Shown here in pieces: positions 15,465 through 64,000 of a stretch of 64,000 bases of DNA. The stretch is taken from contig NW_026782423.1 in NCBI RefSeq assembly GCF_031769215.1, positions 372,001 through 436,000 of the forward strand, written 5' to 3'. This DNA is from Ylistrum balloti (taxonomy: Eukaryota). The notes under the pieces are model-generated. The model had not been told where the DNA came from. It was given only the letters and a program-made list of their open reading frames with translations, and did not search any database. The stretch's first letter is position 1, and each line of letters starts with the position of its first letter. The position numbers and the translations under genes are program-made.

Positions 15465-15520
15465 ACACACACACTCTCACATACACACACCACACACACG
15501 CCCACCCTCACACACACCAC
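15465..15520. repeat. Imperfect (CA)n microsatellite
   Basis: acacacacactctcacatacacacaccacacacacgcccaccctcacacacaccac. Confidence 0.8.
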
Positions 15521-39080: not shown

Positions 39081-39309
39081 CTCTCTGTTGAACGCCAATG
39101 TACTTGGTGTACATCGGTTATTCTATCACTTCAACGGCAATACCTTAAGACAACTCGACAACACTTTTGAAATGTGTGGCAAAGTATGTATGTAACACTC
39201 CCTGTTGAACTTAAATGTACTTAATGTACATCGGTTATTCTATCACTTTAACAGCAATACGTTAGGACAACTCGACAACACTTTTGAAATGTGTGTCAAA
39301 GTATGTATC
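39081..39309. repeat. Two-copy 117-bp tandem duplication
   Basis: ctc(t/c)ctgttgaac...gtacatcggttattctatcact...gacaactcgacaacacttttgaaatgtgtg starts at 39081 and again at 39198. Confidence 0.85.
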
Positions 39310-40507: not shown

Positions 40508-43500
40508 ATGCACTTTGGTGCTCTACTGTTTCTGGCTTCTATAACCTTATCATGTGGTGAGTTATAGATTAAGTAAATATAAGGATCAAATACCGAGCAT
40601 TAATTTCAAAGATAAATGAAATTAAAAAGACATTTTAGTGTCTTTAGGTATGAACTGTCTTATCAATGTCAAAGTCATAAACGGTGAAGTTTAACTCAGT
40701 GATTATGTATTGTACGGAAAGCTTTGAGACAGTAAGATGAAATATATTTGATGGTTAGAATGATTTTTACGTGAACATTTTCATACCATCACCGTTTTAT
40801 GTGATATCTGTCTTTGTCTAGTTTGATCAATTACAGGGTGGATTTCAAAACTGTTCAAATCACGTTGTTGATTAAAAGGTTCCATAACCTAATGCTTGAA
40901 TAAATTATTTAAAAGTTAAATACATGATTTTTGAGTTACCGAATTCCGAACGGAATTAGTCGTTTTCGCAAAGTTCTAGCTTTAATCATGCATTTAGTAC
41001 GGCATGAAATCATTTCATTTAACGAAAACCAACTCCAGAAAACTATTGCTAATTTTGCAAATGCATTAGGACCGCATGCATTTATATCGACGAACGATTT
41101 TTGACGAGACCTTTGGGAGCCCGTTCTGTTGGCATGGACGCTGAATATATCTTTTATCGGACGTTACGGTCATAAAGCATGTGCCGACGAACCTACCAAC
41201 ACAATTAGATATTAATCTTACCTACACAATTAGATATTAATCTTAATGTTTTCCGTTCCATATTTCTTATCTGATTCTATATATAGACACATGAAAACAC
41301 GTATTTGCTATCGAACGTGCCTTGATTTTTTCTTCAATTAATAAGGAAGCAGTCGATGCTGATATATCCAGTTTCTTTTAAAATCGAAAATTTACAAGAT
41401 TGTTTTTCCCGTGATAGATATTTATGTATCAAATTTCGTTAGGCTTCGAATTAAAATACAACAGTGGATACATGCTTATCAACATGGGCTACTGTTTTAT
41501 CATGTGGAAAAATAAAGCAACATTTAATGATAAATGAAAAGAAATCATTAAATTGCACCGAACCCAAGCGCCTGTGATAGTTTTTAAAAGCTAAAATGGT
41601 CTGCATATACATATCTTATGTCCATTTTCAAGTTATGATAAGGATATTTATACACGTGCGATTTTAGGGTATTAATTAAAGATTGTTAGTGTAATTTAAT
41701 AGTTTCAAACTATGTTATTGACATGTGAACGATGTATAACAAAGAACATAGACATCAAACAGAAACTATTTAAGTCCTTTTCTACACATAACGTTATAGT
41801 AGTACAAGACAAAAAATTAAACATACACTTTAGTCATTAGATGATAATAATATTGCAATGTAATACAAGGGTATAACTTCCTTTCTACCTGTATTTTGAT
41901 ATTGTGTAATAAGAAATATGAACTGCCTAAAAGCGAGCGCAAATTGGTGAACAAGATGCACATTTTGAACTGCCTAATACATGTCTGCACTGAAGCATGT
42001 TTTAAAGATTTCTTTTATATTTTGCAAGATTTTAACCAAACGTCGGCACATCCACACGTACCGATGTATTATTATCATCATCATCATCATCTAAAAAAAC
42101 AGCACCAGCATGATCAGGCTTCGATTTCAGGGTTCGATTCCTGAATAGAAATGGGTTTCCTCCCACAGTAAGACCCCTCGCATGCGTTCAACAAGAGTGA
42201 TTTTTAGGAGTTGAAATAAGTTTCCATATGTAAATAATTCATGCACATACAATCATACAACATGAAGACATACAATGAAGAATAAAACAAATGACGACAA
42301 GATAACGCAAAGCTTGACATTACCTACGCGCCCGCTTACCCCCGCGCCCCGCTGTATAAAAGAATGACGAACAATCATATGTATATGTTAATATTACAAC
42401 AAGTTTAATTTCTATTTGTTATCTTTCATTGTAATTTGGCCAAGTATTAAAATGGTGTATTTTCCCATATCAAAAGATACTACTAGCTTAATAAGAGTAA
42501 AAAGTTTTAAGCTTTGCTCTAGAATGGTTTCAGAGCATTGTGTCAAAAACCTGAAATTTGTGATGAGGATTATCTGTCTCCATGGTAACAGAAAATGTAT
42601 GAATAAAGTCTTTGACGACATATCTACATTATAAAAATTGATCACAAAATTTTCAAAACAAATGTGAAAGAGTTTCCTTTACAAAGTTTGTAGATTGCAG
42701 AGAGTACTACCTATCACCTTATATATATATATATATATATATATAACAATAAATGGGAAATAACACTTCACTTTTGTCAGGTCACGTGCAAGTTGAACCT
42801 GATGGCCGAGTTCTCATCACTAGCAACTCTTTGTCCATTTTCGGCACAATTTGTGGAGATGGATGGAGCGACGAGTCAGCAAGCGTGGTTTGTCGTAATG
42901 CGGGTTTGTCCAATACAGGTACAGCTATCATGTTACCGCCTTCCTCTGTCTATAGGACGATGTCTGTGTTGCATTTAGCTTGCACAGGAAAAGAGGCAGA
43001 CTGTAATCAGTGCCACAAGGAGGATTTCATTATCGGTATCTCGGTATGTCCCTCCAACATGGAAGCTGGCGTGGACTGTTTCGGTGGCATGGTGACACCG
43101 TCACCGACACCTGGTAATTTGGCTTCCTCTACAAAGATGCCTATTACAAGTTAGTAAACTATTCATTCTTTTATCTATATTAATATAGTGAATAATTCTT
43201 ACTTGCTTAATGTCCTTACGCTATCAACACTTTAAAGATCTGCTCACATACAAAGTGCAGAATAATATTGTTTCCTGATGAGAAGTAACGGGCTACTTAA
43301 TCAGCGACTGAACGGTAATGTGATGTATTCGGTTATTCAAGTATATATTGATGAAGTCTCCGTAATATATTACATGCATATATCTTTTTTATACCTTTCC
43401 AACAATTCCAAACAATGTGTATGGTTATCGTGCGTAACGGAACGGAAAATGCTAAGATTTCATAATATCTGATTGTTACCTGAGCCTATACAAGTGAGTG

Positions 43501-46500
43501 TAAATTTCAAGTGTTTGAAACCGATCTTTGACACTGACGATGCAAATCTAATTCTTGTTCGTATATACTGGCTATGTGACCATGTAAATTTCAATACTAA
43601 AAGTACTCATTAATGCATTTTCTTTACCATGGTTTAATTATCGTCGATGATTTAGAGAAAATGATGGCATCCGTTTGATCGATTCTAAAAATTCGAGATA
43701 TGTAAGGCGAAATCATTTAGAAACAAGCAGATTGTTGATAAAACATGATAGATATTTTCATTTAACTGAAATATTGAATAATCGTAGATTTTTGCATCTT
43801 GACGATGCTGTTTTCAATTGGTTTTGTAATTGGAATATCTAATATATCATTATATCATTAACCTGTTAATAAATATATGCAACGATAACTGGGAAATAAC
43901 ACTTGACTATTTTCAGGTCACGTGCAAGTTGAACCTGATGGCCGAGTTCTCATCACTGGCAACTCTTTGTCCATTTTCGGCACAATTTGTGGAGATGGAT
44001 GGAGCGACGAGTCAGCAAGCGTGGTTTGTCGTAATGCGGGTTTGTCCAATACAGGTACAGCTATCATGTTACCGCCTTCCTCTGTCTATAGGACGATGTC
44101 TGTGTTGCATTTAGCTTGCACAGGAAAAGAGGCAGACTGTAATCAGTGCCACAAGGAGGATTTCATTATCGGTATCTCGGTATGTCCCTCCAACATGGAA
44201 GCTGGCGTGGACTGTTTCGGTGGCATGCTGACACCGTCACCGACACCTGGTAATTTGGCTCCTCTACAAAGATGCCTATTACAAGTTAGTAAACTATTCA
44301 TTCTTTTATCTATATTAATATAGTGAATAATTCTTACTTGCTTAATGTCCTTACGCTATCAACACTTTAAAGATCTGCTCACATACAAAGTGCAGAATAA
44401 TATTGTTTCCTGATGAGAAGTAACGGGCTACTTAATCAGCGACTGAACGGTAATGTGATGTATTCGGTTATTCAAGTATATATTGATGAAGTCTCCGTAA
44501 TATATTACATGCATATATCTTTTTTATACCTTTCCAACAATTCCAAACAATGTGTATGGTTATCGTGCGTAACGGAACGGAAAATGCTAAGATTTCATAA
44601 TATCTGATTGTTACCTGAGCCTATACAAGTGAGTGTAAATTTCAAGTGTCTGAAACCGATCTTTGACACTGACGATGCAAATCTAATTCTTGTTCGTATA
44701 TACTGGCTATGTGACCATGTAAATTTCAATACTAAAAGTACTCATTAATGCATTTTCTTTACCATGGTTTAATTATCGTCGATGATTTAGAGAAAATGAT
44801 GGCATCCGTTTGATCGATTCTAAAAATTCGAGATATGTAAGGCGAAATCATTTAGAAACAAGCAGATTGTTGATAAAACATGATAGATATTTTCATTTAA
44901 CTGAAATATTGAATAATCGTAGATTTTTGCATCTTGACGATGCTGTTTTCAATTGGTTTTGTAATTGGAATATCTAATATATCATTATATCATTAACCTG
45001 TTAATAAATATATGCAACGATAACTGGGAAATAACACTTGACTATTTTCAGGTCACGTGCAAGTTGAACCTGATGGCCGAGTTCTCATCACTGGCAACTC
45101 TTTGTCCATTTTCGGCACAATTTGTGGAGATGGATGGAGCGACGAGTCAGCAAGCGTGGTTTGTCGTAATGCGGGTTTGTCCAATACAGGTACAGCTATC
45201 ATGTTACCGCCTTCCTCTGTCTATAGGACGATGTCTGTGTTGCATTTAGCTTGCACAGGAAAAGAGGCAGACTGTAATCAGTGCCACAAGGAGGATTTCA
45301 TTATCGGTATCTCGGTATGTCCCTCCAACATGGAAGCTGGCGTGGACTGTTTCGGTGGCATGGTGACACCGTCACCGACACCTGGTAATTTGGCTTCCTC
45401 TACAAAGATGCCTATTACAAGTTAGTAAACTATTCATTCTTTTATCTATATTAATATAGTGAATAATTCTTACTTGCTTAATGTCCTTACGCTATCAACA
45501 CTTTAAAGATCTGCTCACATACAAAGTGCAGAATAATATTGTTTCCTGATGAGAAGTAACCGGCTACTTAATCAGCGACTGAACGGTAATGTGATGTATT
45601 CGGTTATTCAAGTATATATTGATGAAGTCTCCGTAATATATTACATGCATATATCTTTTTTTATACCTTTCCAACAATTCCAAACAATGTGTATGGTTAT
45701 CGTGCGTAACGGAACGGAAAATGCTAAGATTTCATAATATCTGATTGTTACCTGAGCCTATACAAGTGAGTGTAAATTTCAAGTGTCTGAAACCGATCTT
45801 TGACACTGACGATGCAAATCTAATTCTTGTTCGTATATACTGGCTATGTGACCATGTAAATTTCAATACTAAAAGTACTCATTAATGCATTTTCTTTACC
45901 ATGGTTTAATTATCGTCGATGATTTAGAGAAAATGATGGCATCCGTTTGATCGATTCTAAAAATTCGAGATATGTAAGGCGAAATCATTTAGAAACAAGC
46001 AGATTGTTGATAAAACATGATAGATATTTTCATTTAACTGAAATATTGAATAATCGTAGATTTTTGCATCTTGACGATGCTGTTTTCAATTGGTTTTGTA
46101 ATTGGAATATCTAATATATCATTATATCATTAACCTGTTAATAAATATATGCAACGATAACTGGGAAATAACACTTGACTATTTTCAGGTCACGTGCAAG
46201 TTGAACCTGATGGCCGAGTTCTCATCACTGGCAACTCTTTGTCCATTTTCGGCACAATTTGTGGAGATGGATGGAGCGACGAGTCAGCAAGCGTGGTTTG
46301 TCGTAATGCGGGTTTGTCCAATACAGGTACAGCTATCATGTTACCGCCTTCCTCTGTCTATAGGACGATGTCTGTGTTGCATTTAGCTTGCACAGGAAAA
46401 GAGGCAGACTGTAATCAGTGCCACAAGGAGGATTTCATTATCGGTATCTCGGTATGTCCCTCCAACATGGAAGCTGGCGTGGACTGTTTCGGTGGCATGG

Positions 46501-49500
46501 TGACACCGTCACCGACACCTGGTAATTTGGCTTCCTCTACAAAGATGCCTATTACAAGTTAGTAAACTATTCATTCTTTTATCTATATTAATATAGTGAA
46601 TAATTCTTACTTGCTTAATGTCCTTACGCTATCAACACTTTAAAGATCTGCTCACATACAAAGTGCAGAATAATATTGTTTCCTGATGAGAAGTAACGGG
46701 CTACTTAATCAGCGACTGAACGGTAATGTGATGTATTCGGTTATTCAAGTATATATTGATGAAGTCTCCGTAATATATTACATGCATATATCTTTTTTTA
46801 TACCTTTCCAACAATTCCAAACAATGTGTATGGTTATCGTGCGTAACGGAACGGAAAATGCTAAGATTTCATAATATCTGATTGTTACCTGAGCCTATAC
46901 AAGTGAGTGTAAATTTCAAGTGTCTGAAACCGATCTTTGACACTGACGATGCAAATCTAATTCTTGTTCGTATATACTGGCTATGTGACCATGTAAATTT
47001 CAATACTAAAAGTACTCATTAATGCATTTTCTTTACCATGGTTTAATTATCGTCGATGATTTAGAGAAAATGATGGCATCCGTTTGATCGATTCTAAAAA
47101 TTCGAGATATGTAAGGCGAAATCATTTAGAAACAAGCAGATTGTTGATAAAACATGATAGATATTTTCATTTAACTGAAATATTGAATAATCGTAGATTT
47201 TTGCATCTTGACGATGCTGTTTTCAATTGGTTTTGTAATTGGAATATCTAATATATCATTATATCATTAACCTGTTAATAAATATATGCAACGATAACTG
47301 GGAAATAACACTTGACTATTTTCAGGTCACGTGCAAGTTGAACCTGATGGCCGAGTTCTCATCACTGGCAACTCTTTGTCCATTTTCGGCACAATTTGTG
47401 GAGATGGATGGAGCGACGAGTCAGCAAGCGTGGTTTGTCGTAATGCGGGTTTGTCCAATACAGGTACAGCTATCATGTTACCGCCTTCCTCTGTCTATAG
47501 GACGATGTCTGTGTTGCATTTAGCTTGCACAGGAAAAGAGGCAGACTGTAATCAGTGCCACAAGGAGGATTTCATTATCGGTATCTCGGTATGTCCCTCC
47601 AACATGGAAGCTGGCGTGGACTGTTTCGGTGGCATGGTGACACCGTCACCGACACCTGGTAATTTGGCTTCCTCTACAAAGATGCCTATTACAAGTTAGT
47701 AAACTATTCATTCTTTTATCTATATTAATATAGTGAATAATTCTTACTTGCTTAATGTCCTTACGCTATCAACACTTTAAAGATCTGCTCACATACAAAG
47801 TGCAGAATAATATTGTTTCCTGATGAGAAGTAACGGGCTACTTAATCAGCGACTGAACGGTAATGTGATGTATTCGGTTATTCAAGTATATATTGATGAA
47901 GTCTCCGTAATATATTACATGCATATATCTTTTTTTATACCTTTCCAACAATTCCAAACAATGTGTATGGTTATCGTGCGTAACGGAACGGAAAATGCTA
48001 AGATTTCATAATATCTGATTGTTACCTGAGCCTATACAAGTGAGTGTAAATTTCAAGTGTCTGAAACCGATCTTTGACACTGACGATGCAAATCTAATTC
48101 TTGTTCGTATATACTGGCTATGTGACCATGTAAATTTCAATACTAAAAGTACTCATTAATGCATTTTCTTTACCATGGTTTAATTATCGTCGATGATTTA
48201 GAGAAAATGATGGCATCCGTTTGATCGATTCTAAAAATTCGAGATATGTAAGGCGAAATCATTTAGAAACAAGCAGATTGTTGATAAAACATGATAGATA
48301 TTTTCATTTAACTGAAATATTGAATAATCGTAGATTTTTGCATCTTGACGATGCTGTTTTCAATTGGTTTTGTAATTGGAATATCTAATATATCATTATA
48401 TCATTAACCTGTTAATAAATATATGCAACGATAACTGGGAAATAACACTTGACTATTTTCAGGTCACGTGCAAGTTGAACCTGATGGCCGAGTTCTCATC
48501 ACTGGCAACTCTTTGTCCATTTTCGGCACAATTTGTGGAGATGGATGGAGCGACGAGTCAGCAAGCGTGGTTTGTCGTAATGCGGGTTTGTCCAATACAG
48601 GTACAGCTATCATGTTACCGCCTTCCTCTGTCTATAGGACGATGTCTGTGTTGCATTTAGCTTGCACAGGAAAAGAGGCAGACTGTAATCAGTGCCACAA
48701 GGAGGATTTCATTATCGGTATCTCGGTATGTCCCTCCAACATGGAAGCTGGCGTGGACTGTTTCGGTGGCATGGTGACACCGTCACCGACACCTGGTAAT
48801 TTGGCTTCCTCTACAAAGATGCCTATTACAAGTTAGTAAACTATTCATTCTTTTATCTATATTAATATAGTGAATAATTCTTACTTGCTTAATGTCCTTA
48901 CGCTATCAACACTTTAAAGATCTGCTCACATACAAAGTGCAGAATAATATTGTTTCCTGATGAGAAGTAACCGGCTACTTAATCAGCGACTGAACGGTAA
49001 TGTGATGTATTCGGTTATTCAAGTATATATTGATGAAGTCTCCGTAATATATTACATGCATATATCTTTTTTATACCTTTCCAACAATTCCAAACAATGT
49101 GTATGGTTATCGTGCGTAACGGAACGGAAAATGCTAAGATTTCATAATATCTGATTGTTACCTGAGCCTATACAAGTGAGTGTAAATTTCAAGTGTCTGA
49201 AACCGATCTTTGACACTGACGATGCAAATCTAATTCTTGTTCGTATATACTGGCTATGTGACCATGTAAATTTCAATACTAAAAGTACTCATTAATGCAT
49301 TTTCTTTACCATGGTTTAATTATCGTCGATGATTTAGAGAAAATGATGGCATCCGTTTGATCGATTCTAAAAATTCGAGATATGTAAGGCGAAATCATTT
49401 AGAAACAAGCAGATTGTTGATAAAACATGATAGATATTTTCATTTAACTGAAATATTGAATAATCGTAGATTTTTGCATCTTGACGATGCTGTTTTCAAT

Positions 49501-52500: not shown

Positions 52501-55500
52501 AACAATGTGTATGGTTATCGTGCGTAACGGAACGGAAAATGCTAAGATTTCATAATATCTGATTGTTACCTGAGCCTATACAAGTGAGTGTAAATTTCAA
52601 GTGTTTGAAACCGATCTTTGACACTGACGATGCAAATCTAATTCTTGTTCGTATATACTGGCTATGTGACCATGTAAATTTCAATACTAAAAGTACTCAT
52701 TAATGCATTTTCTTTACCATGGTTTAATTATCGTCGATGATTTAGAGAAAATGATGGCATCCGTTTGATCGATTCTAAAAATTCGAGATATGTAAGGCGA
52801 AATCATTTAGAAACAAGCAGATTGTTGATAAAACATGATAGATATTTTCATTTAACTGAAATATTGAATAATCGTAGATTTTTGCATCTTGACGATGCTG
52901 TTTTCAATTGGTTTTGTAATTGGAATATCTAATATATCATTATATCATTAACCTGTTAATAAATATATGCAACGATAACTGGGAAATAACACTTGACTAT
53001 TTTCAGGTCACGTGCAAGTTGAACCTGATGGCCGAGTTCTCATCACTGGCAACTCTTTGTCCATTTTCGGCACAATTTGTGGAGATGGATGGAGCGACGA
53101 GTCAGCAAGCGTGGTTTGTCGTAATGCGGGTTTGTCCAATACAGGTACAGCTATCATGTTACCGCCTTCCTCTGTCTATAGGACGATGTCTGTGTTGCAT
53201 TTAGCTTGCACAGGAAAAGAGGCAGACTGTAATCAGTGCCACAAGGAGGATTTCATTATCGGTATCTCGGTATGTCCCTCCAACATGGAAGCTGGCGTGG
53301 ACTGTTTCGGTGGCATGGTGACACCGTCACCGACACCTGGTAATTTGGCTTCCTCTACAAAGATGCCTATTACAAGTTAGTAAACTATTCATTCTTTTAT
53401 CTATATTAATATAGTGAATAATTCTTACTTGCTTAATGCTCACATACAAAGTGCAGAATAATAATTTTTCCTGATGAGAAGGAGAAGGCTATTTCAACAA
53501 TGACTGAACGGTTATAAGATCTGATGCATTGGTTTATGGGTATGTGTATCGTATCTAACGGACCGGAAGTGCATTCGTTCATCTTTTGGTTCTTGTAAGA
53601 ATGTGTTTAAGACATAAATATTTGCGATTCATATGTTTAAAAAATTAGATCTGATTCCATGTGTTTTCATTGCTGGCCTGCACTGAACGTTCTTTTCATC
53701 ATCATAACTCGCCGATACATGTAGAAATTGCTATCGCTTTGATAATACACGTTGACTGATGTGGATATTATAAATGTGGCGTTAATGAAAACCCAATTCG
53801 TCCATTACAGATAACAGGACGGAAGAAGTATATATCGGTCCGAATGGTCGTGTCATGGTGTTTGACAAAGTTAAGGGAATAGAAGGTACAGTGTGCAGTA
53901 ACGCTTGGGATGATCGAGATGCCGAAGTTGTTTGTCGGTATCTTGGTCTAGGTAGTCCAGCTGTGGCGGAAACTCTGCCAAGGGACTTTGGCTTCAACAG
54001 GACAGCGTTTGGTATACATTGTCTTGGCAACGAGACTGATATTTCGCAATGTAGTGCCGATACATATGATGTAACTATGGGAGCATGTGACCAAATGGGC
54101 GATGCTGTGGCGAGATGTGCAATGATGCCAGTGACAAGTACGTCTTGTTTTCTTTCGTTCTTTTAAATGAAAGGTGTTGTACTTTCCGAGAAATTCGTAT
54201 GTGTTCATACCGATTTCAACAGTTACATGAGTATCTATTTTCGAACGTAACATGGATTCCATATCAGAAAAAATTCCAAAAGATTGTTAAAGTGGAAATA
54301 TCCCTTTTATCGGGATTTTGCATATGTATATTCGCATCTTGCTCTACAAGAATAGTTTCATTCATAGTTGTTACTATCAACGTTTACATTGATATTAACT
54401 AGAGAATAGATTTTGTTGGAGTTGATATTGAAGTTGAGGATCAAGTCTAGGATGAATAGACATTGCCCTTCTGGTGTGTCAACGAAATCGTTTAAAACCA
54501 TGTGTGATATTGTGTATAAGTAGTTGTTCCTTTCGATAGCTCGAAAGTAACTGAAATGCTTTGATCATTAGAAGAATTGTTAATGTGACTGATATAAATA
54601 TTTGAACGTCGTGTTTATTGCAGACAACATAACACACGACGTATACATTGATCCAAGTGGTCGAGTTATGATGTTTGATAAAGCAAAGAGAACTGAGGGC
54701 ACTGTGTGCAGTAACGCTTGGGATGACCGAGACGCCGAAGTGCTTTGTCGATATCTTGGTCTAGGTGGTCCGGCTTCAGCAGAAACTTTGCCAAGGGACT
54801 TTCGCTTTAACAGAACAGCGTTTGGTATACATTGTCTTGGAAATGAGACTGATCTTTGGCAATGCAAGGGTGACAACTACGACGTAACTATGGGAGCTTG
54901 CAACTATATGGATGATGCCGTGGCGAGATGTGGAATCACGCCCAAGACAAGTATGATTCATTAGCAAATTATTTAAACTTTGATACGTATCAGTGTTCTG
55001 ATTTATCTTCGATAATGCAATACTATGTTTTATTTGTGGGAATGTTACATCTATCACAGAAAATATTCATTCAATTGGGGAAATAGAGGAAATAGGCGAA
55101 ATCGTCATTTGATCAATATTTCGGAAAGAAGTAAAACGCGTGGATGTTAACTTTCAGATAGACGAAGAAAAACTCCGCTTCGCATATTCTCTATTATTTG
55201 CAATTCTTTCCTCTTTGCTTCTTCCAAGCATATGTTTACCAAGGAGAGACATAAGCATTTGCGATTCATATGTTTAAAAAATTAGATCTGATTCCATGTG
55301 TTTTCATTGCTGGCCTGCACTGAACGTTCTTTTCATCATCATAACTCGCCGATACATGTAGAAATTGCTATCGCTTTGATAATACACGTTGACTGATGTG
55401 GATATTATAAATGTGGCGTTAATGAAAACCCAATTCGTCCATTACAGATAACAGGACGGAAGAAGTATATATCGGTCCGAATGGTCGTGTCATGGTGTTT

Positions 55501-58500
55501 GACAAAGTTAAGGGAATAGAAGGTACAGTGTGCAGTAACGCTTGGGATGATCGAGATGCCGAAGTTGTTTGTCGGTATCTTGGTCTAGGTAGTCCAGCTG
55601 TGGCGGAAACTCTGCCAAGGGACTTTGGCTTCAACAGGACAGCGTTTGGTATACATTGTCTTGGCAACGAGACTGATATTTCGCAATGTAGTGCCGATAC
55701 ATATGATGTAACTATGGGAGCATGTGACCAAATGGGCGATGCTGTGGCGAGATGTGCAATGATGCCAGTGACAAGTACGTCTTGTTTTCTTTCGTTCTTT
55801 TAAATGAAAGGTGTTGTACTTTCCGAGAAATTCGTATGTGTTCATACCGATTTCAACAGTTACATGAGTATCTATTTTCGAACGTAACATGGATTCCATA
55901 TCAGAAAAAATTCCAAAAGATTGTTAAAGTGGAAATATCCCTTTTATCGGGATTTTGCATATGTATATTCGCATCTTGCTCTACAAGAATAGTTTCATTC
56001 ATAGTTGTTACTATCAACGTTTACATTGATATTAACTAGAGAATAGATTTTGTTGGAGTTGATATTGAAGTTGAGGATCAAGTCTAGGATGAATAGACAT
56101 TGCCCTTCTGGTGTGTCAACGAAATCGTTTAAAACCATGTGTGATATTGTGTATAAGTAGTTGTTCCTTTCGATAGCTCGAAAGTAACTGAAATGCTTTG
56201 ATCATTAGAAGAATTGTTAATGTGACTGATATAAATATTTGAACGTCGTGTTTATTGCAGACAACATAACACACGACGTATACATTGATCCAAGTGGTCG
56301 AGTTATGATGTTTGATAAAGCAAAGAGAACTGAGGGCACTGTGTGCAGTAACGCTTGGGATGACCGAGACGCCGAAGTGCTTTGTCGATATCTTGGTCTA
56401 GGTGGTCCGGCTTCAGCAGAAACTTTGCCAAGGGACTTTCGCTTTAACAGAACAGCGTTTGGTATACATTGTCTTGGAAATGAGACTGATCTTTGGCAAT
56501 GCAAGGGTGACAACTACGACGTAACTATGGGAGCTTGCAACTATATGGATGATGCCGTGGCGAGATGTGGAATCACGCCCAAGACAAGTATGATTCATTA
56601 GCAAATTATTTAAACTTTGATACGTATCAGTGTTCTGATTTATCTTCGATAATGCAATACTATGTTTTATTTGTGGGAATGTTACATCTATCACAGAAAA
56701 TATTCATTCAATTGGGGAAATAGAGGAAATAGGCGAAATCGTCATTTGATCAATATTTCGGAAAGAAGTAAAACGCGTGGATGTTAACTTTCAGATAGAC
56801 GAAGAAAAACTCCGCTTCGCATATTCTCTATTATTTGCAATTCTTTCCTCTTTGCTTCTTCCAAGCATATGTTTACCAAGGAGAGACATAAGCATTTGCG
56901 ATTCATATGTTTAAAAAATTAGATCTGATTCCATGTGTTTTCATTGCTGGCCTGCACTGAACGTTCTTTTCATCATCATAACTCGCCGATACATGTAGAA
57001 ATTGCTATCGCTTTGATAATACACGTTGACTGATGTGGATATTATAAATGTGGCGTTAATGAAAACCCAATTCGTCCATTACAGATAACAGGACGGAAGA
57101 AGTATATATCGGTCCGAATGGTCGTGTCATGGTGTTTGACAAAGTTAAGGGAATAGAAGGTACAGTGTGCAGTAACGCTTGGGATGATCGAGATGCCGAA
57201 GTTGTTTGTCGGTATCTTGGTCTAGGTAGTCCAGCTGTGGCGGAAACTCTGCCAAGGGACTTTGGCTTCAACAGGACAGCGTTTGGTATACATTGTCTTG
57301 GCAACGAGACTGATATTTCGCAATGTAGTGCCGATACATATGATGTAACTATGGGAGCATGTGACCAAATGGGCGATGCTGTGGCGAGATGTGCAATGAT
57401 GCCAGTGACAAGTACGTCTTGTTTTCTTTCGTTCTTTTAAATGAAAGGTGTTGTACTTTCCGAGAAATTCGTATGTGTTCATACCGATTTCAACAGTTAC
57501 ATGAGTATCTATTTTCGAACGTAACATGGATTCCATATCAGAAAAAATTCCAAAAGATTGTTAAAGTGGAAATATCCCTTTTATCGGGATTTTGCATATG
57601 TATATTCGCATCTTGCTCTACAAGAATAGTTTCATTCATAGTTGTTACTATCAACGTTTACATTGATATTAACTAGAGAATAGATTTTGTTGGAGTTGAT
57701 ATTGAAGTTGAGGATCAAGTCTAGGATGAATAGACATTGCCCTTCTGGTGTGTCAACATCGTTTAAAACCATGTGTGATATTGTGTATAAGTAGTTGTTC
57801 CTTTCGATAGCTCGAAAGTAACTGAAATGCTTTGATCATTAGAAGAATTGTTAATGTGACTGATATAAATATTTGAACGTCGTGTTTATTGCAGACAACA
57901 TAACACACGACGTATACATTGATCCAAGTGGTCGAGTTATGATGTTTGATAAAGCAAAGAGAACTGAGGGCACTGTGTGCAGTAACGCTTGGGATGACCG
58001 AGACGCCGAAGTGCTTTGTCGATATCTTGGTCTAGGTGGTCCGGCTTCAGCAGAAACTTTGCCAAGGGACTTTCGCTTTAACAGAACAGCGTTTGGTATA
58101 CATTGTCTTGGAAATGAGACTGATCTTTGGCAATGCAAGGGTGACAACTACGACGTAACTATGGGAGCTTGCAACTATATGGATGATGCCGTGGCGAGAT
58201 GTGGAATCACGCCCAAGACAAGTATGATTCATTAGCAAATTATTTAAACTTTGATACGTATCAGTGTTCTGATTTATCTTCGATAATGCAATACTATGTT
58301 TTATTTGTGGGAATGTTACATCTATCACAGAAAATATTCATTCAATTGGGGAAATAGAGGAAATAGGCGAAATCGTCATTTGATCAATATTTCGGAAAGA
58401 AGTAAAACGCGTGGATGTTAACTTTCAGATAGACGAAGAAAAACTCCGCTTCGCATATTCTCTATTATTTGCAATTCTTTCCTCTTTGCTTCTTCCAAGC

Positions 58501-61500
58501 ATATGTTTACCAAGGAGAGACATAAGCATTTGCGATTCATATGTTTAAAAAATTAGATCTGATTCCATGTGTTTTCATTGCTGGCCTGCACTGAACGTTC
58601 TTTTCATCATCATAACTCGCCGATACATGTAGAAATTGCTATCGCTTTGATAATACACGTTGACTGATGTGGATATTATAAATGTGGCGTTAATGAAAAC
58701 CCAATTCGTCCATTACAGATAACAGGACGGAAGAAGTATATATCGGTCCGAATGGTCGTGTCATGGTGTTTGACAAAGTTAAGGGAATAGAAGGTACAGT
58801 GTGCAGTAACGCTTGGGATGATCGAGATGCCGAAGTTGTTTGTCGGTATCTTGGTCTAGGTAGTCCAGCTGTGGCGGAAACTCTGCCAAGGGACTTTGGC
58901 TTCAACAGGACAGCGTTTGGTATACATTGTCTTGGCAACGAGACTGATATTTCGCAATGTAGTGCCGATACATATGATGTAACTATGGGAGCATGTGACC
59001 AAATGGGCGATGCTGTGGCGAGATGTGCAATGATGCCAGTGACAAGTACGTCTTGTTTTCTTTCGTTCTTTTAAATGAAAGGTGTTGTACTTTCCGAGAA
59101 ATTCGTATGTGTTCATACCGATTTCAACAGTTACATGAGTATCTATTTTCGAACGTAACATGGATTCCATATCAGAAAAAATTCCAAAAGATTGTTAAAG
59201 TGGAAATATCCCTTTTATCGGGATTTTGCATATGTATATTCGCATCTTGCTCTACAAGAATAGTTTCATTCATAGTTGTTACTATCAACGTTTACATTGA
59301 TATTAACTAGAGAATAGATTTTGTTGGAGTTGATATTGAAGTTGAGGATCAAGTCTAGGATGAATAGACATTGCCCTTCTGGTGTGTCAACGAAATCGTT
59401 TAAAACCATGTGTGATATTGTGTATAAGTAGTTGTTCCTTTCGATAGCTCGAAAGTAACTGAAATGCTTTGATCATTAGAAGAATTGTTAATGTGACTGA
59501 TATAAATATTTGAACGTCGTGTTTATTGCAGACAACATAACACACGACGTATACATTGATCCAAGTGGTCGAGTTATGATGTTTGATAAAGCAAAGAGAA
59601 CTGAGGGCACTGTGTGCAGTAACGCTTGGGATGACCGAGACGCCGAAGTGCTTTGTCGATATCTTGGTCTAGGTGGTCCGGCTTCAGCAGAAACTTTGCC
59701 AAGGGACTTTCGCTTTAACAGAACAGCGTTTGGTATACATTGTCTTGGAAATGAGACTGATCTTTGGCAATGCAAGGGTGACAACTACGACGTAACTATG
59801 GGAGCTTGCAACTATATGGATGATGCCGTGGCGAGATGTGGAATCACGCCCAAGACAAGTATGATTCATTAGCAAATTATTTAAACTTTGATACGTATCA
59901 GTGTTCTGATTTATCTTCGATAATGCAATACTATGTTTTATTTGTGGGAATGTTACATCTATCACAGAAAATATTCATTCAATTGGGGAAATAGAGGAAA
60001 TAGGCGAAATCGTCATTTGATCAATATTTCGGAAAGAAGTAAAACGCGTGGATGTTAACTTTCAGATAGACGAAGAAAAACTCCGCTTCGCATATTCTCT
60101 ATTATTTGCAATTCTTTCCTCTTTGCTTCTTCCAAGCATATGTTTACCAAGGAGAGACATAAGCATTTGCGATTCATATGTTTAAAAAATTAGATCTGAT
60201 TCCATGTGTTTTCATTGCTGGCCTGCACTGAACGTTCTTTTCATCATCATAACTCGCCGATACATGTAGAAATTGCTATCGCTTTGATAATACACGTTGA
60301 CTGATGTGGATATTATAAATGTGGCGTTAATGAAAACCCAATTCGTCCATTACAGATAACAGGACGGAAGAAGTATATATCGGTCCGAATGGTCGTGTCA
60401 TGGTGTTTGACAAAGTTAAGGGAATAGAAGGTACAGTGTGCAGTAACGCTTGGGATGATCGAGATGCCGAAGTTGTTTGTCGGTATCTTGGTCTAGGTAG
60501 TCCAGCTGTGGCGGAAACTCTGCCAAGGGACTTTGGCTTCAACAGGACAGCGTTTGGTATACATTGTCTTGGCAACGAGACTGATATTTCGCAATGTAGT
60601 GCCGATACATATGATGTAACTATGGGAGCATGTGACCAAATGGGCGATGCTGTGGCGAGATGTGCAATGATGCCAGTGACAAGTACGTCTTGTTTTCTTT
60701 CGTTCTTTTAAATGAAAGGTGTTGTACTTTCCGAGAAATTCGTATGTGTTCATACCGATTTCAACAGTTACATGAGTATCTATTTTCGAACGTAACATGG
60801 ATTCCATATCAGAAAAAATTCCAAAAGATTGTTAAAGTGGAAATATCCCTTTTATCGGGATTTTGCATATGTATATTCGCATCTTGCTCTACAAGAATAG
60901 TTTCATTCATAGTTGTTACTATCAACGTTTACATTGATATTAACTAGAGAATAGATTTTGTTGGAGTTGATATTGAAGTTGAGGATCAAGTCTAGGATGA
61001 ATAGACATTGCCCTTCTGGTGTGTCAACGAAATCGTTTAAAACCATGTGTGATATTGTGTATAAGTAGTTGTTCCTTTCGATAGCTCGAAAGTAACTGAA
61101 ATGCTTTGATCATTAGAAGAATTGTTAATGTGACTGATATAAATATTTGAACGTCGTGTTTATTGCAGACAACATAACACACGACGTATACATTGATCCA
61201 AGTGGTCGAGTTATGATGTTTGATAAAGCAAAGAGAACTGAGGGCACTGTGTGCAGTAACGCTTGGGATGACCGAGACGCCGAAGTGCTTTGTCGATATC
61301 TTGGTCTAGGTGGTCCGGCTTCAGCAGAAACTTTGCCAAGGGACTTTCGCTTTAACAGAACAGCGTTTGGTATACATTGTCTTGGAAATGAGACTGATCT
61401 TTGGCAATGCAAGGGTGACAACTACGACGTAACTATGGGAGCTTGCAACTATATGGATGATGCCGTGGCGAGATGTGGAATCACGCCCAAGACAAGTATG

Positions 61501-63956
61501 ATTCATTAGCAAATTATTTAAACTTTGATACGTATCAGTGTTCTGATTTATCTTCGATAATGCAATACTATGTTTTATTTGTGGGAATGTTACATCTATC
61601 ACAGAAAATATTCATTCAATTGGGGAAATAGAGGAAATAGGCGAAATCGTCATTTGATCAATATTTCGGAAAGAAGTAAAACGCGTGGATGTTAACTTTC
61701 AGATAGACGAAGAAAAACTCCGCTTCGCATATTCTCTATTATTTGCAATTCTTTCCTCTTTGCTTCTTCCAAGCATATGTTTACCAAGGAGAGACATAAG
61801 CATTTGCGATTCATATGTTTAAAAAATTAGATCTGATTCCATGTGTTTTCATTGCTGGCCTGCACTGAACGTTCTTTTCATCATCATAACTCGCCGATAC
61901 ATGTAGAAATTGCTATCGCTTTGATAATACACGTTGACTGATGTGGATATTATAAATGTGGCGTTAATGAAAACCCAATTCGTCCATTACAGATAACAGG
62001 ACGGAAGAAGTATATATCGGTCCGAATGGTCGTGTCATGGTGTTTGACAAAGTTAAGGGAATAGAAGGTACAGTGTGCAGTAACGCTTGGGATGATCGAG
62101 ATGCCGAAGTTGTTTGTCGGTATCTTGGTCTAGGTAGTCCAGCTGTGGCGGAAACTCTGCCAAGGGACTTTGGCTTCAACAGGACAGCGTTTGGTATACA
62201 TTGTCTTGGCAACGAGACTGATATTTCGCAATGTAGTGCCGATACATATGATGTAACTATGGGAGCATGTGACCAAATGGGCGATGCTGTGGCGAGATGT
62301 GCAATGATGCCAGTGACAAGTACGTCTTGTTTTCTTTCGTTCTTTTAAATGAAAGGTGTTGTACTTTCCGAGAAATTCGTATGTGTTCATACCGATTTCA
62401 ACAGTTACATGAGTATCTATTTTCGAACGTAACATGGATTCCATATCAGAAAAAATTCCAAAAGATTGTTAAAGTGGAAATATCCCTTTTATCGGGATTT
62501 TGCATATGTATATTCGCATCTTGCTCTACAAGAATAGTTTCATTCATAGTTGTTACTATCAACGTTTACATTGATATTAACTAGAGAATAGATTTTGTTG
62601 GAGTTGATATTGAAGTTGAGGATCAAGTCTAGGATGAATAGACATTGCCCTTCTGGTGTGTCAACGAAATCGTTTAAAACCATGTGTGATATTGTGTATA
62701 AGTAGTTGTTCCTTTCGATAGCTCGAAAGTAACTGAAATGCTTTGATCATTAGAAGAATTGTTAATGTGACTGATATAAATATTTGAACGTCGTGTTTAT
62801 TGCAGACAACATAACACACGACGTATACATTGATCCAAGTGGTCGAGTTATGATGTTTGATAAAGCAAAGAGAACTGAGGGCACTGTGTGCAGTAACGCT
62901 TGGGATGACCGAGACGCCGAAGTGCTTTGTCGATATCTTGGTCTAGGTGGTCCGGCTTCAGCAGAAACTTTGCCAAGGGACTTTCGCTTTAACAGAACAG
63001 CGTTTGGTATACATTGTCTTGGAAATGAGACTGATCTTTGGCAATGCAAGGGTGACAACTACGACGTAACTATGGGAGCTTGCAACTATATGGATGATGC
63101 CGTGGCGAGATGTGGAATCACGCCCAAGACAAGTATGATTCATTAGCAAATTATTTAAACTTTGATACGTATCAGTGTTCTGATTTATCTTCGATAATGC
63201 AATACTATGTTTTATTTGTGGGAATGTTACATCTATCACAGAAAATATTCATTCAATTGGGGAAATAGAGGAAATAGGCGAAATCGTCATTTGATCAATA
63301 TTTCGGAAAGAAGTAAAACGCGTGGATGTTAACTTTCAGATAGACGAAGAAAAACTCCGCTTCGCATATTCTCTATTATTTGCAATTCTTTCCTCTTTGC
63401 TTCTTCCAAGCATATGTTTACCAAGGAGAGACATAAGCATTTGCGATTCATATGTTTAAAAAATTAGATCTGATTCCATGTGTTTTCATTGCTGGCCTGC
63501 ACTGAACGTTCTTTTCATCATCATAACTCGCCGATACATGTAGAAATTGCTATCGCTTTGATAATACACGTTGACTGATGTGGATATTATAAATGTGGCG
63601 TTAATGAAAACCCAATTCGTCCATTACAGATAACAGGACGGAAGAAGTATATATCGGTCCGAATGGTCGTGTCATGGTGTTTGACAAAGTTAAGGGAATA
63701 GAAGGTACAGTGTGCAGTAACGCTTGGGATGATCGAGATGCCGAAGTTGTTTGTCGGTATCTTGGTCTAGGTAGTCCAGCTGTGGCGGAAACTCTGCCAA
63801 GGGACTTTGGCTTCAACAGGACAGCGTTTGGTATACATTGTCTTGGCAACGAGACTGATATTTCGCAATGTAGTGCCGATACATATGATGTAACTATGGG
63901 AGCATGTGACCAAATGGGCGATGCTGTGGCGAGATGTGCAATGATGCCAGTGACAA
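40508..63956 (+). CDS. Very large secreted/surface multi-SRCR protein (DMBT1-like scavenger receptor cysteine-rich), 3' end beyond window
   Basis: Signal exon 40508-40556 (MHFGALLFLASITLSC, G|GTGAGT; in-frame upstream ATG at 40457). Ten type-A exons (369 nt) start at 42781, 43917, 45052, 46189, 47326, 48463, 49599, 50735, 51871, 53007. B1 exons (327 nt) start at 53811, 55448, 57085, 58719, 60356, 61993, 63630. B2 exons (327 nt) start at 54624, 56261, 57895, 59532, 61169, 62806. All are AG/GT flanked, phase 1-1. SRCR motifs GRV..GT(I/V)C..W....A.VVCR..G...C.G.E.....C...C...AGVDC/AVARC. Confidence 0.88.
42115..42230 (+). mobile_element. Internally deleted tRNA-derived SINE (related to 33600-33803)
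   Basis: B box GGTTCGATTCC, then ggtttcctcccacagtaagacccctcgc and tail caacaagagtgattttt..aataag. Confidence 0.55.
42720..42745. repeat. (TA)13 microsatellite at the left edge of the SRCR array
   Basis: Perfect TA run ending 35 nt before the first SRCR acceptor. Confidence 0.95.
42750..53440 (+). repeat. SRCR array A: 10 exon copies in ~1136-bp tandem units (exon + intron)
   Basis: Periods of 1135-1137 bp from the ORF track. Only a handful of substitutions and 1-nt indels are visible across units, in introns as well as exons. Confidence 0.97.
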
Positions 63957-64000
63957 GTACGTCTTGTTTTCTTTCGTTCTTTTAAATGAAAGGTGTTGTA
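53610..64000 (+). repeat. SRCR array B: 1637-bp two-exon (B1+B2) units, about 6.4 copies, runs off the window
   Basis: Period 1637 bp, one period 1634 from a 3-bp intronic deletion near 57757. The translated ORFs of all units are identical. Confidence 0.97.

Follow-up and report, generated by a model that had tools for sequence, protein, structure and literature searches.

A predicted mucus-type surface glycoprotein gene with two homogenised arrays of SRCR exons in the scallop Ylistrum balloti

Human DMBT1 (SALSA, gp340) is a mucin-like hybrid glycoprotein in which each tandem SRCR domain has its own exon and glycosylated Ser/Thr-rich stretches are interspersed. Its array varies in copy number through tandem repeat units, giving 7 to 21 SRCR domains per allele; shorter forms bind bacteria less well, and by long-read cDNA most transcripts carry the genomically encoded repeat number (PMC9038570). 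In SRCR superfamily genes of sea urchins and sponges, single-exon SRCR domains are tandemly duplicated in replication units of one or two domains, but these arrays, unlike the scallop arrays described here, consist of diverged paralogous domains or genes; mucin is unmentioned in that paper, and no report of units identical through their introns was seen in it (PMC10855680). Membrane-tethered and gel-forming mucins share with the scallop gene a very large central exon with Ser/Thr/Pro tandem repeats. In the LPA kringle IV type 2 array, multi-kilobase units of exon plus intron stand in tandem, nearly identical and frame-keeping, and their copy number differs widely between alleles and sets protein size.

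A gene design resembling that of DMBT1 is already known in kind. We give a probability of about 0.75 to the reading that a single gene of ~35 kb in Ylistrum balloti, with two homogenised SRCR arrays, encodes a mucus-type surface glycoprotein. The gene runs from position 40508 of the window (the 64,000-nucleotide stretch of DNA that was analysed) to ~11.8 kb past the window end and has 29 SRCR domains, one per exon, with a predicted product of ~4,950 to 5,060 residues. In contrast to DMBT1, the homogenised blocks are of two kinds, one with a single domain per unit and one with two; linkers are encoded within the SRCR exons instead of in separate SID exons; and the gene has a single 1,541-residue Ser/Thr/Pro (PTS) exon and a hydrophobic tail at the C terminus, but no CUB or ZP domains. 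Identity with DMBT1 SRCR domains is low (E value of 1e-5 in sequence search, 22 to 25% in structural alignments). In contrast to the mucins, the gene has an SRCR array as its N-terminal half and showed no SEA, VWD, or cystine-knot domains; LPA differs in encoding a plasma protein with kringle domains, in having two exons per unit, and in lacking a mucin region.

The predicted order is a signal peptide, 10 A-type SRCR domains, and 8 B1-B2 SRCR pairs, followed by a ninth B1 joined to the PTS region, 2 divergent SRCR domains, a second Thr/Ser-rich region, and the hydrophobic tail. The signal exon, the choice of A donor, the link from the A to the B array, and the last exon are predictions from genomic sequence. 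The 5' end of the gene would be as follows.

40508-40556, + strand, predicted exon 1: 49 nt, ATG and 16-residue hydrophobic signal-type peptide, donor GTGAGT, phase 1
40557-42780, + strand, intron 1: dispersed repeat at ~41900-42700, (TA)13 run at 42720-42745

The 12.8 kb that precede A1 contain only four ATG-started frames that reach a GTRAG donor in phase 1, and exon 1 is the only one of these with a signal-like hydrophobic core. The dispersed repeat in intron 1 has 99 genome-wide matches, and the (TA)13 run borders the A array on its left side. A further in-frame ATG lies upstream of exon 1, at 40457.

The A array consists of the following features (coordinates from the exon table).

42746-53515, + strand, A array: 10 units of 1135-1137 bp arranged head to tail, with one SRCR exon and a short Ser/Thr/Pro linker per unit
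42781-43149, + strand, A1 exon: 369 nt with the distal donor A|GTTAGT, proximal alternative after 43113; Pfam SRCR 46.5 bits
43917-44249, + strand, A2 exon: 333 nt, proximal donor
45052-45420, + strand, A3 exon: Pfam SRCR 45.9 bits
46189-46557, + strand, A4 exon
47326-47694, + strand, A5 exon
48463-48831, + strand, A6 exon
49599-49967, + strand, A7 exon
50735-51103, + strand, A8 exon
51871-52239, + strand, A9 exon
53007-53375, + strand, A10 exon

The repeat finder placed the 10 A copies, with the same spacing of 1135 to 1137 bp, at 42.7 to 53.3 kb. Similarity among units begins ~48 nt 5' of the A1 acceptor and array-like sequence stops ~176 nt 3' of the A10 donor. When nine A units were aligned, 8 of 1,137 columns were variable (3 of them within the 333-nt core of the exon, 1 in the linker, and 4 in the intron), and variant states were common to neighbouring units, e.g., units 3 to 5 and units 7 to 9; 1-bp indels occurred at columns 344 and 605. 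Two candidate donors stand in phase in each unit, G|GTAATT and, 36 nt downstream, A|GTTAGT. The indel at column 344 is a 1-bp deletion in unit 2, within the 36-nt linker between the two donors, so the distal donor is out of frame in that unit. The NCBI model takes the proximal donor at A2 only.

The A array is joined to the B array, in this prediction, by an intron of ordinary length (435 to 471 nt).

53376-53810, + strand, A10-to-B1 intron: chimera
53573-64000 (part in window), + strand, B array: 1,637-bp units of B1, 486-nt intron, B2, 497-nt intron
53811-54137, + strand, B1 copy 1: 327 nt, donor A|GTACGT
54624-54950, + strand, B2 copy 1: 327 nt, donor A|GTATGA
55448-55774, + strand, B1 copy 2: Pfam SRCR 52.7 bits
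56261-56587, + strand, B2 copy 2: Pfam SRCR 51.3 bits
57085-57411, + strand, B1 copy 3
57895-58221, + strand, B2 copy 3
58719-59045, + strand, B1 copy 4
59532-59858, + strand, B2 copy 4: NCBI model P0002 terminates here, running into the intron
60356-60682, + strand, B1 copy 5
61169-61495, + strand, B2 copy 5
61993-62319, + strand, B1 copy 6
62806-63132, + strand, B2 copy 6
63630-63956, + strand, B1 copy 7: final exon in the window

The 5' 176 nt of the chimeric intron resemble the A intron (80%) and its 3' 238 nt the B2-to-B1 intron (93%); contigs of sample X1 map on 53409-53649, within this region. The repeat finder gave 13 B-type copies at 53.8 to 63.9 kb with spacing alternating between 813 and 824 bp, i.e., 6 units and one B1; the full array has 8 units and reaches extended coordinate 66911 (L009:2911). 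Seven of the 8 are identical, introns included, over 1,637 bp, apart from one 3-bp intron indel (unit 3), and the last differs at its 3' edge only. Thus, by unit alignment of both arrays, introns are as alike as exons, as the preliminary description had claimed. B1 and B2 have 80% nucleotide identity (dS, 0.79; dN, 0.13), and the ratio of 0.17 points to purifying selection and coding constraint; the B1-to-B2 and B2-to-B1 introns are not alignable with each other.

The preliminary description had also proposed at least 23 symmetric SRCR exons in two tandem arrays, ordered as a signal exon, (A)x10, and (B1-B2)x6 plus B1, with every domain a single phase 1-1 exon. The repeat finder and the exon table both give 23, the order agrees with the exon table, and all 23 are bounded by an AG acceptor and a GT donor, are a multiple of 3 nt long, and have phase 1-1, a phase kept also in the probable Argopecten orthologue. 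Its figure of ~2,660 residues encoded in the window is reproduced with the distal A donor (16 + 10 × 123 + 13 × 109 = 2,663) and becomes 2,543 with the proximal one; the second candidate donor and the deletion in the unit 2 linker are what has to be corrected in its gene structure.

Past the window the numbering is continued on the same contig (L009, 64001-74000; L010, 74001-84000).

Start 64443, + strand, B2 exon
Start 65267, + strand, B1 exon
Start 66080, + strand, B2 exon
66912-71843, + strand, B1'+PTS exon: ninth B1 fused to the 1,541-residue Ser/Thr/Pro repeat
72069-72383, + strand, SRCR C exon: divergent SRCR
73988-74302, + strand, SRCR D exon: divergent SRCR
74833-75414, + strand, second Thr/Ser-rich exon
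75726 to stop at ~75805, + strand, predicted last exon: short, hydrophobic C-terminal, in phase
75953, + strand, AATAAA: 150 nt after the stop

The open frame of the B1'+PTS exon has 1,653 codons. Its PTS part is 41% Ser, 13% Thr, and 10% Pro (64% together), with repeats of 54, 159, 426, and 480 nt, i.e., nested periods of 18, 53, 142, and 160 residues. This continuation of the ninth B1 frame supports the earlier suggestion of a mucus protein. A transmembrane segment, CUB, and ZP had been proposed as possible downstream features; a hydrophobic tail exon was found, which looks like a putative GPI-attachment signal or membrane anchor, but there was no CUB or ZP open frame in the gene and no ZP match on this contig.

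The unit counts (10 A, 8 B) come from one assembly. It is rather unlikely that the gene is real but these counts and the perfect identity stem from repeat mis-sizing or polishing. The 100% identity of seven B units is what polishing would yield, the 1-bp A-unit indels are typical of long-read assembly errors, and 1 or 2 B units are enough to account for the contigs of four other samples, versus 8 in the assembly. In those samples the contig k-mer depth of A is also far above that of B (~12 to 28:1 versus 10:8.5 in the assembly), such depths not being copy numbers. However, blanket homogenisation would have removed the 8 variable A columns with their neighbour-shared states. In addition, the A unit collapses into one cyclic unit-length contig in independent short-read assemblies (a contig of sample X5 returns onto itself after 1,136 bp, and one of 1,170 bp from X1 spans one A unit), so high within-animal identity is real. 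Tandem repeats are collapsed by assemblers more often than they are expanded, which also argues against an artefact. The other samples are different animals, so copy-number polymorphism accounts equally well for a differing count. The identity of units could nevertheless have been exaggerated by polishing with multi-mapped reads.

Both the head-to-tail order of the A units and the junction of B1 with the mucin region are confirmed by contigs of the other samples: a 441-bp contig in 4 of 4 other runs joins B1 to the PTS exon, and an unbranched X5 contig leads from the B1-to-B2 intron across B2 and a B1'-type exon to the PTS exon. Their B-unit contigs differ from the reference at 8 to 16 sites, and several of these differences recur across runs at one unit position, whereas the eight reference units mutually agree. 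Together with the 1 or 2 B units that suffice there, these differences fit a recent amplification, or concerted evolution, combined with differing copy number. The same origin had been proposed in the preliminary description, and the equal identity of introns and exons, the low identity within other multi-SRCR arrays of the genome, the collapse of the A unit, and the recurrent B differences support it. The length variation proposed there gains a lead, not a measurement, from the samples in which 1 or 2 B units suffice.

Length might vary instead mainly by regulated skipping of identical symmetric exons, as somatic or isoform diversity, and not by germline copy number. Phase 1-1 throughout means that every exon subset splices in frame, and the frameshifted unit 2 would be tolerable if skipped. 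We consider this unlikely, as skipping is minor in DMBT1, whose transcripts mostly carry the genomic repeat number (PMC9038570), and the contigs of other samples suggest germline differences.

That the array domains are SRCR domains is indicated by Pfam (PF00530, 46 to 56 bits; cut-off, 26.1 bits), by sequence matches in the PDB (CD163, PIT54, CD5L, neurotrypsin, and DMBT1), and by an AF2 model of the A domain (pLDDT, 81) for which the top Foldseek matches listed were all SRCR structures (TM, 0.56 to 0.69). Part of the gene already bears a name at NCBI, [quoted passage not shown] This name, the tandem single-exon SRCR domains with Ser/Thr-rich stretches, and the weaker bacterial binding of short DMBT1 forms would suit a true DMBT1/SALSA-type receptor, which binds microbes or polyanions through a dual cation site and in which domain number sets avidity. 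The cation-binding residues of DMBT1 SRCR8 are D1019, D1020, and E1086 (site 2) and D1058, D1059, and N1081 (site 3), and either D1019A or D1020A is enough to abolish binding (PMC7043408). Alignment places G-D, no acidic pair, and M at these positions in the A type; in the B type they are occupied by S-N, G-I, and G or D. In place of the Trp of the GRVEV....W stretch, A carries Phe and B carries Glu, and the scallop domains have 6 or 7 Cys instead of the 8 in DMBT1. Because the cation-site residues are missing, the product would not use DMBT1's Ca2+-bridged ligand site, and a receptor of this type is quite improbable. The parallel to DMBT1 drawn earlier holds for the design, including the difference of two blocks; with cation-binding residues, CUB, and ZP absent, the gene is DMBT1-like in design but no member of the family.

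It is very unlikely that two or more separate genes or a partly decaying pseudogene array are present, despite the split NCBI annotation (P0002 covers A1, in part, to the fourth B2) and the A2 deletion, since the internal Met start of P0002 and its final read-through into an intron are typical of a truncated prediction, all 30 internal exons have phase 1-1 and intact AG/GT sites without stops, neither a start-type exon nor a poly(A) signal context lies between the arrays, the A10-to-B1 intron is ordinary, B1 and B2 are under apparent purifying selection, and the B1'-PTS contig recurs in four samples.

A- and B-type exons are confined to this locus in the genome, in which no second haplotig of the locus was found; units of the other multi-SRCR arrays (C712 and C121) have 22 to 46% protein identity. 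A locus of Argopecten irradians (CM084269.1:6.94 Mb), annotated piecemeal as "neurotrypsin-like" (P0001, L013), is the probable orthologue. Its first A-like exon is 69% identical, Ser/Thr linker included, and in the same phase, and at least 11 tandem single-exon SRCR units of phase 1-1 follow; the 5 kb upstream of the Argopecten array yielded no counterpart to the signal exon. However, the amplified subtype, A', is 53% identical to Ylistrum A and 60% to its own first exon, and the period is ~580 bp. Exons of the Argopecten units are 98.7% identical and introns only 91.6%; its array is thus older or less homogenised.

In the single-gene reading, the symmetry of the exons leaves the frame intact when units are gained, lost, or skipped. 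Unequal exchange or gene conversion among units would lengthen, shorten, and homogenise both arrays, and the B array of the reference haplotype may be a very recent expansion from one B1-B2 unit. The product, as predicted from the gene, would be a putatively heavily glycosylated mucus-type glycoprotein, tethered to the surface or shed, with a variable number of SRCR modules.

A repeat finder applied to 40 to 64 kb of the window revealed two families of direct repeats. The first runs from 42.7 kb onward and has 10 copies at a spacing of 1135 to 1137 bp; the second runs from 53.8 kb onward and has 13 copies with spacings that alternate between 813 and 824 bp, so that the repeating unit measures 1,637 bp and consists of two related halves. 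Neither family was seen by TRF because its maximum period was 500. Each unit has a stop-free frame that matches the SRCR domain (Pfam PF00530) at 46 to 53 bits, the cut-off being 26.1. The first unit, with one SRCR domain, is called A, and the two halves of the second are called B1 and B2.

When exons were defined by splice motifs, the window contained 23 SRCR exons (10 A, 7 B1, and 6 B2, with B1 and B2 both 327 nt long). All have AG acceptors, GT donors, and lengths that are multiples of three, and all are phase 1-1, as are all the SRCR exons of the whole gene (27 arrayed and two single). Four ATG-started frames with a phase-1 GTRAG donor lie in the 12.8 kb 5′ of A1, and only the one at 40508 has a signal-like core. 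The preliminary description had proposed 23 symmetric SRCR exons in two tandem arrays behind a signal exon; the repeat finder and the exon table reproduced this arrangement, and that description was right in every countable detail. The ~2,660 amino acids (aa) it assigned to the window became 2,663 aa or 2,543 aa, depending on whether the distal or the proximal of two candidate splice donors is used in the A exons (discussed below). Total protein lengths are sums of exon lengths, and similarity searches were run exon by exon. The exons outside the arrays are as follows (coordinates above 64000 continue the window numbering past its end).

40508 to 40556, + strand: predicted exon 1, 49 nt; ATG plus 16 residues, most of them hydrophobic; the donor, GTGAGT, follows the first base of the next codon
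72069 to 72383, + strand: SRCR exon C; Pfam 46.2 bits; phase 1-1 with good splice sites
73988 to 74302, + strand: SRCR exon D; phase 1-1; genome-level SRCR match at C566:446014-446289 (C566 is the contig that contains the window, at 372001-436000)
3′ of D, + strand: Thr/Ser-rich exon, 582 nt, phase 1-1; ~190 aa, Thr 29%, Ser 22%
From 75726, + strand: predicted last exon; 26 residues in phase 1, a 17-residue hydrophobic run, then two residues and a stop

The Pfam scores were 45.9 to 46.5 bits for A, 52.7 for B1, 51.3 for B2, 46.2 for C, and 55.6 for B1′, a ninth B1 that ends the B array (cut-off, 26.1). An AF2 model of the A domain (pLDDT 81.3, pTM 0.74) was compared with the PDB by Foldseek, and the top matches listed were all SRCR domains (MARCO, CD163, PIT54, neurotrypsin, M2BP, and DMBT1; TM 0.56 to 0.69). 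Thus, as modeled, the A domain has the SRCR fold. By the usual criterion, SRCR domains with six cysteines belong to group A and those with eight to group B. B1 and B2 have six, and A has seven, i.e., the six framework cysteines, which are invariant in an alignment of 24 sequences, plus an extra one before the fourth. The extra cysteine, also found in the first A-like exon of a second scallop, Argopecten irradians, is presumably unpaired; that the ten free thiols of the A domains could cross-link the protein is speculation.

The units are nearly identical. Aligned from acceptor to acceptor, nine A units differ at 8 of 1,137 columns; three of these are in the exon core (all change an amino acid), one is in the linker that follows it, and four are in the intron. 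Variant states tend to be common to neighbors, e.g., units 3 to 5 and units 7 to 9. Across 1,637 bp the eight B units show just two departures from identity: a 3-bp indel in an intron of unit 3, and the 3′ edge of the last unit. These alignments bear out the earlier observation that the introns are as alike as the exons. B1 and B2, however, are only 80% identical to each other in nucleotides (dS 0.79, dN 0.13, ratio 0.17), and the two introns that accompany them are too different to align. The dS value suggests that the B1-B2 pair may be older than the scallop genera. B1 and B2 are therefore old copies under purifying selection, yet the B units are identical, from which it follows that an old two-domain unit was amplified recently. 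The edges of the arrays diverge more than the interior. A (TA)13 run lies at the left edge of the A array, and the intron between A10 and the first B1 is a chimera of the start of an A intron and the end of a B2-to-B1 intron. A search of the 648.5-Mb assembly found no A- or B-type exons outside this locus and no second haplotig. Because the units of other multi-SRCR arrays, on contigs C712 and C121 of the same assembly, are just 22 to 46% identical in protein, the near-identity of the A and B units is exceptional even within this genome.

Chance can be ruled out as the origin of ten copies that are ≥99.7% identical over 1.1 kb. A satellite or a transposon is ruled out by the dN/dS ratio of 0.17, by the conservation of exon phase and protein in Argopecten, and by the presence of the units at one locus only.

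Several other repeats were observed nearby. A dispersed repeat of ~800 bp lies in intron 1 (window 41900 to 42700) and at 15016 to 15473 on the − strand; it has at least 99 matches in the genome at 67 to 92% identity, often in two or three collinear pieces, and is probably a non-autonomous transposable element. An open frame within it has only a subthreshold match to DUF6615. Short tandem duplications are at 39075 to 39308 (117 bp, two copies, 5′ of exon 1) and 41194 to 41245 (25 bp, two copies, intron 1). Other large single-exon SRCR arrays, with spacings of 0.5 to 1 kb, are at C712:257-276 kb and C121:648-676 kb, and in clusters on contigs C789, C376, and C731 the SRCR domains are split across two exons.

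Each A unit has two candidate donors in one phase, G|GTAATT and, 36 nt 3′ of it, A|GTTAGT. The distal donor extends the exon by a 12-residue Ser/Thr-rich linker. It is predicted to be preferred because the NCBI partial model of this gene (P0002) uses it in nine A units, and because the first A-like exon of Argopecten has no GT at the proximal site, a strong GTGAGT at the distal site, and the linker conserved in frame. A unit 2 (43917 to 44285) has a 1-bp deletion (TT to T) in the 36 nt between the donors, and consequently its distal donor is out of frame. None of the other differences among the 27 arrayed exons breaks the frame. The deletion is either an error of the assembly or real, in which case use of the proximal donor or skipping of the exon would bypass it.

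We fetched and examined 40 kb past the end of the window. The B array reaches past that end and has eight units in total. It is followed by B1′, which is 94% identical to B1 with the divergence starting at nucleotide 244, and whose open frame continues into a 4,932-nt exon. Beyond B1′, that single exon encodes 1,541 aa rich in Ser (41%), Thr (13%), and Pro (10%) (PTS), with nested tandem repeats (TRF periods of 54, 159, 426, and 480 nt). A long Ser/Thr/Pro-rich tandem-repeat region in a large exon is a feature of mucins, and by its sequence the 1,541-aa region is a mucin-type PTS domain. In addition, every B domain has three N-x-S/T sequons, one of them at each exon junction. The PTS exon is followed by C, D, the Thr/Ser-rich exon, and the predicted last exon, which is preceded by a Ser/Gly-rich stretch; if the preceding donor were read through, the C terminus would be different. 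An AATAAA is 150 nt past the predicted stop. The summed exons predict a protein of 4,944 to 5,064 aa, the C-terminal tail of which resembles a GPI signal or a short membrane anchor.

The preliminary description had asked whether exons for a transmembrane segment, a CUB domain, or a ZP domain lay downstream. The hydrophobic tail is a candidate anchor; the other two were not seen, in that a ZP family search of the genome gave no match on this contig and no CUB domain was seen among the open frames of the gene (+ strand frames ≥70 aa, 64 to 76 kb). The frames in that interval are SRCR, PTS, their out-of-frame shadows, or intronic, and among the Pfam families scanned none matched the intronic frames above the cut-off. 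Further downstream, a single-exon frame of 368 codons with a Sulfotransfer_2 domain (PF03567, E 1e-37) lies at L011:437-1540 (84437 to 85540, + strand; L011 and L012 are downstream stretches). It is 8.6 kb 3′ of the predicted mucin-like stop, an adjacency that proves nothing and may or may not be meaningful. L011:3184-3748 and L012:5996-8586 are minisatellite-like and open in all three + strand frames, with repeating Cys/Leu/Pro/Val-rich and Tyr/Phe/Thr/Val-rich peptides; they are probably noncoding tandem repeats.

Part of this gene is already known from automatic annotation as DMBT1-like. When the B1′-plus-PTS frame was used in a word search, the one protein retrieved was P0002 (2,034 aa), which NCBI calls [quoted passage not shown] The model spans about 42970 to 59870 of the window; its first residue is a Met inside A1, and past the fourth B2 it reads five codons of intron before it stops. 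Judged against the exon table, P0002 is an automatic model truncated at both ends, and the real product is probably ~5,000 aa rather than 2,034 aa. Our literature search turned up no account of either this gene or the Y. balloti genome; the assembly (GCF_031769215.1) is listed in PMC13004937.

DMBT1 is a mucin-like hybrid with 7 to 21 SRCR domains, the number of which varies by tandem copy-number variation (PMC9038570). Like it, the scallop gene has tandem one-exon SRCR domains in frame-neutral exons. In contrast, DMBT1 domains are group B, with eight cysteines, and the scallop domains have six or seven; DMBT1 has CUB domains and a C-terminal ZP domain, neither of which was found in the scallop gene; and the scallop linkers are not separate exons. 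We also compared the cation-binding residues, mapping them onto DMBT1 numbering via the canonical CDD, LDD, and SEDAG motifs. The DMBT1 sequence around these motifs agrees with the published numbering. In SRCR8 of DMBT1 the dual cation site consists of D1019, D1020, and E1086 and of D1058, D1059, and N1081, and it is needed for all ligand binding (PMC7043408). At these positions A has G-D and M, with the acidic pair absent; B has S-N, G-I, and G or D; and C and D have S-F and S-K. B, C, and D retain the structural site (D1023, D1026), and A does not. Thus, the parallel with DMBT1 drawn in the preliminary description holds for the tandem symmetric SRCR architecture and fails for the eight cysteines, the ZP and CUB domains, and the dual cation-site residues. 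As far as the sequence goes, the gene is like DMBT1 in architecture and evolutionary mode, and it falls outside DMBT1 on the features tested.

Word-index protein searches, run per exon under a length filter that hides long proteins, gave one relative for each exon. The A exon found P0001, “neurotrypsin-like [Argopecten irradians].” At the locus of that protein (L013), a first A-like exon 69% identical to Ylistrum A is followed by at least 11 exons, A′, at ~580-bp spacing and in phase 1-1. The identity of A′ is 53% with Ylistrum A and 60% with the first exon of its own locus; since A′ was amplified in one scallop and A in the other, different subtypes expanded in the two. Identity between the Argopecten units is 98.7% for exons and 91.6% for introns, values that argue for an array older or less homogenized than that of Ylistrum. 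Searches of the 5 kb 5′ of the Argopecten array for a counterpart of exon 1 (blastn and tblastn) gave only chance-level matches, the best of which has no ATG. Also at this locus, L013:844-1548, 3.4 kb 5′ of the array, is occupied by a long microsatellite of the (ATAC/TACA) type that has no stop in three frames, and the last unit has an insertion-like interruption past ~12,400. A B-type exon, 63 to 67% identical to B1 and B2 and with the acidic pair replaced by S-N as in B, is on a 1.4-kb metagenome contig (k141_139996, ENA ERZ27315697, 647 to 1033), which presumably comes from another bivalve present in an environmental sample. In sea urchin and sponge, too, domain-level duplication has been described, in units of one or two single-exon SRCR domains (PMC10855680).

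Five sequencing runs from other samples cover 51800 to 57800, all as DNA-type contigs, and four of them (X1, X2, X3, and X5) were compared with the reference. X5 has a 1,082-bp A contig that “goes back 1136,” and X1 has a 1,170-bp contig equal to one A unit; therefore, in those animals too the A units are head to tail and nearly identical. A 441-bp contig present in all four runs departs from B1 at position 295 and continues with the start of the PTS exon. An unbranched X5 contig of 1,650 bp extends from the B1-to-B2 intron, through B2 and a B1′-type exon that has variants at exon positions 44 and 244, and on into the PTS exon, as would be expected of a single B1-B2 unit. The B unit is spanned in X2 and X3 by one contig that is 30 nt longer than the unit. 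Relative to the reference, the B-unit contigs have 8 to 16 differences, several of which recur across runs at the same place in the unit (the equivalents of 54640, 54902, 55088, and 55242); the eight reference units, in contrast, all agree with one another. The A-unit contigs also differ from the reference, at some sites recurrently across runs.

Concerted evolution or very recent amplification would be expected to give this combination of uniformity within arrays and difference between animals. The pattern is independent of how the reference was polished. Together with the identical introns, it supports the earlier proposal that the arrays result from recent amplification or ongoing concerted evolution; as far as the sequence could test it, the wider reading in that description is supported too.

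Unit number is a separate question. The contigs, which are not reads, from the four other samples fit one or two B units, versus eight in the assembly, and many A units. The k-mer depths of the contigs were 232 to 437 for the A unit, 8 to 30 for the B unit, and 11.5 to 15 for the unique junction. Although depths are not copy numbers, these would imply many A units and only one or two B units in these animals, which we take as a lead only. The lead cuts both ways: it may reflect copy-number polymorphism or a mis-sized reference.

The closest analogue for such identical exon-intron units is the kringle IV-2 array of LPA. Unequal crossing-over or gene conversion between units would expand, contract, and homogenize the arrays, and the eight identical B units of the reference may represent a very recent expansion. 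The product would be a glycoprotein of the surface or of mucus, with heavy O- and N-glycosylation and a variable SRCR valency. The gene is a modular SRCR-mucin hybrid whose homogenized exon arrays probably vary in copy number. We hold a stronger reading only tentatively, at roughly one chance in three: within a single scallop species, the locus acts as a hypermutable “valency dial,” with haplotypes several-fold apart in SRCR number (1 to 8 B pairs and ~10 to 30 A units), 1.1- to 1.6-kb exon-intron units amplified and homogenized on a population time scale, and different subtypes in different scallop lineages.

Proteins are known to vary in size and valency among individuals through tandem arrays of frame-neutral domain exons, as in DMBT1, LPA, and the mucin VNTRs. 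The scallop gene is an unusually clean case, with two unit designs, intron-deep identity, another subtype in a related scallop, and early indications of several-fold differences in unit number from animal to animal. Loci of this sort are likely mis-annotated and mis-sized in many mollusc assemblies. If the stronger reading is true, size polymorphism of the DMBT1 or LPA type would have a counterpart in an invertebrate, in a surface mucin whose SRCR domains have lost the canonical cation site. If confirmed, the gene would make it practical to measure, in an invertebrate, how fast unequal exchange and concerted evolution proceed within a coding region, and to test whether SRCR valency in a mucosal glycoprotein matters for how a filter feeder handles microbes or particles.
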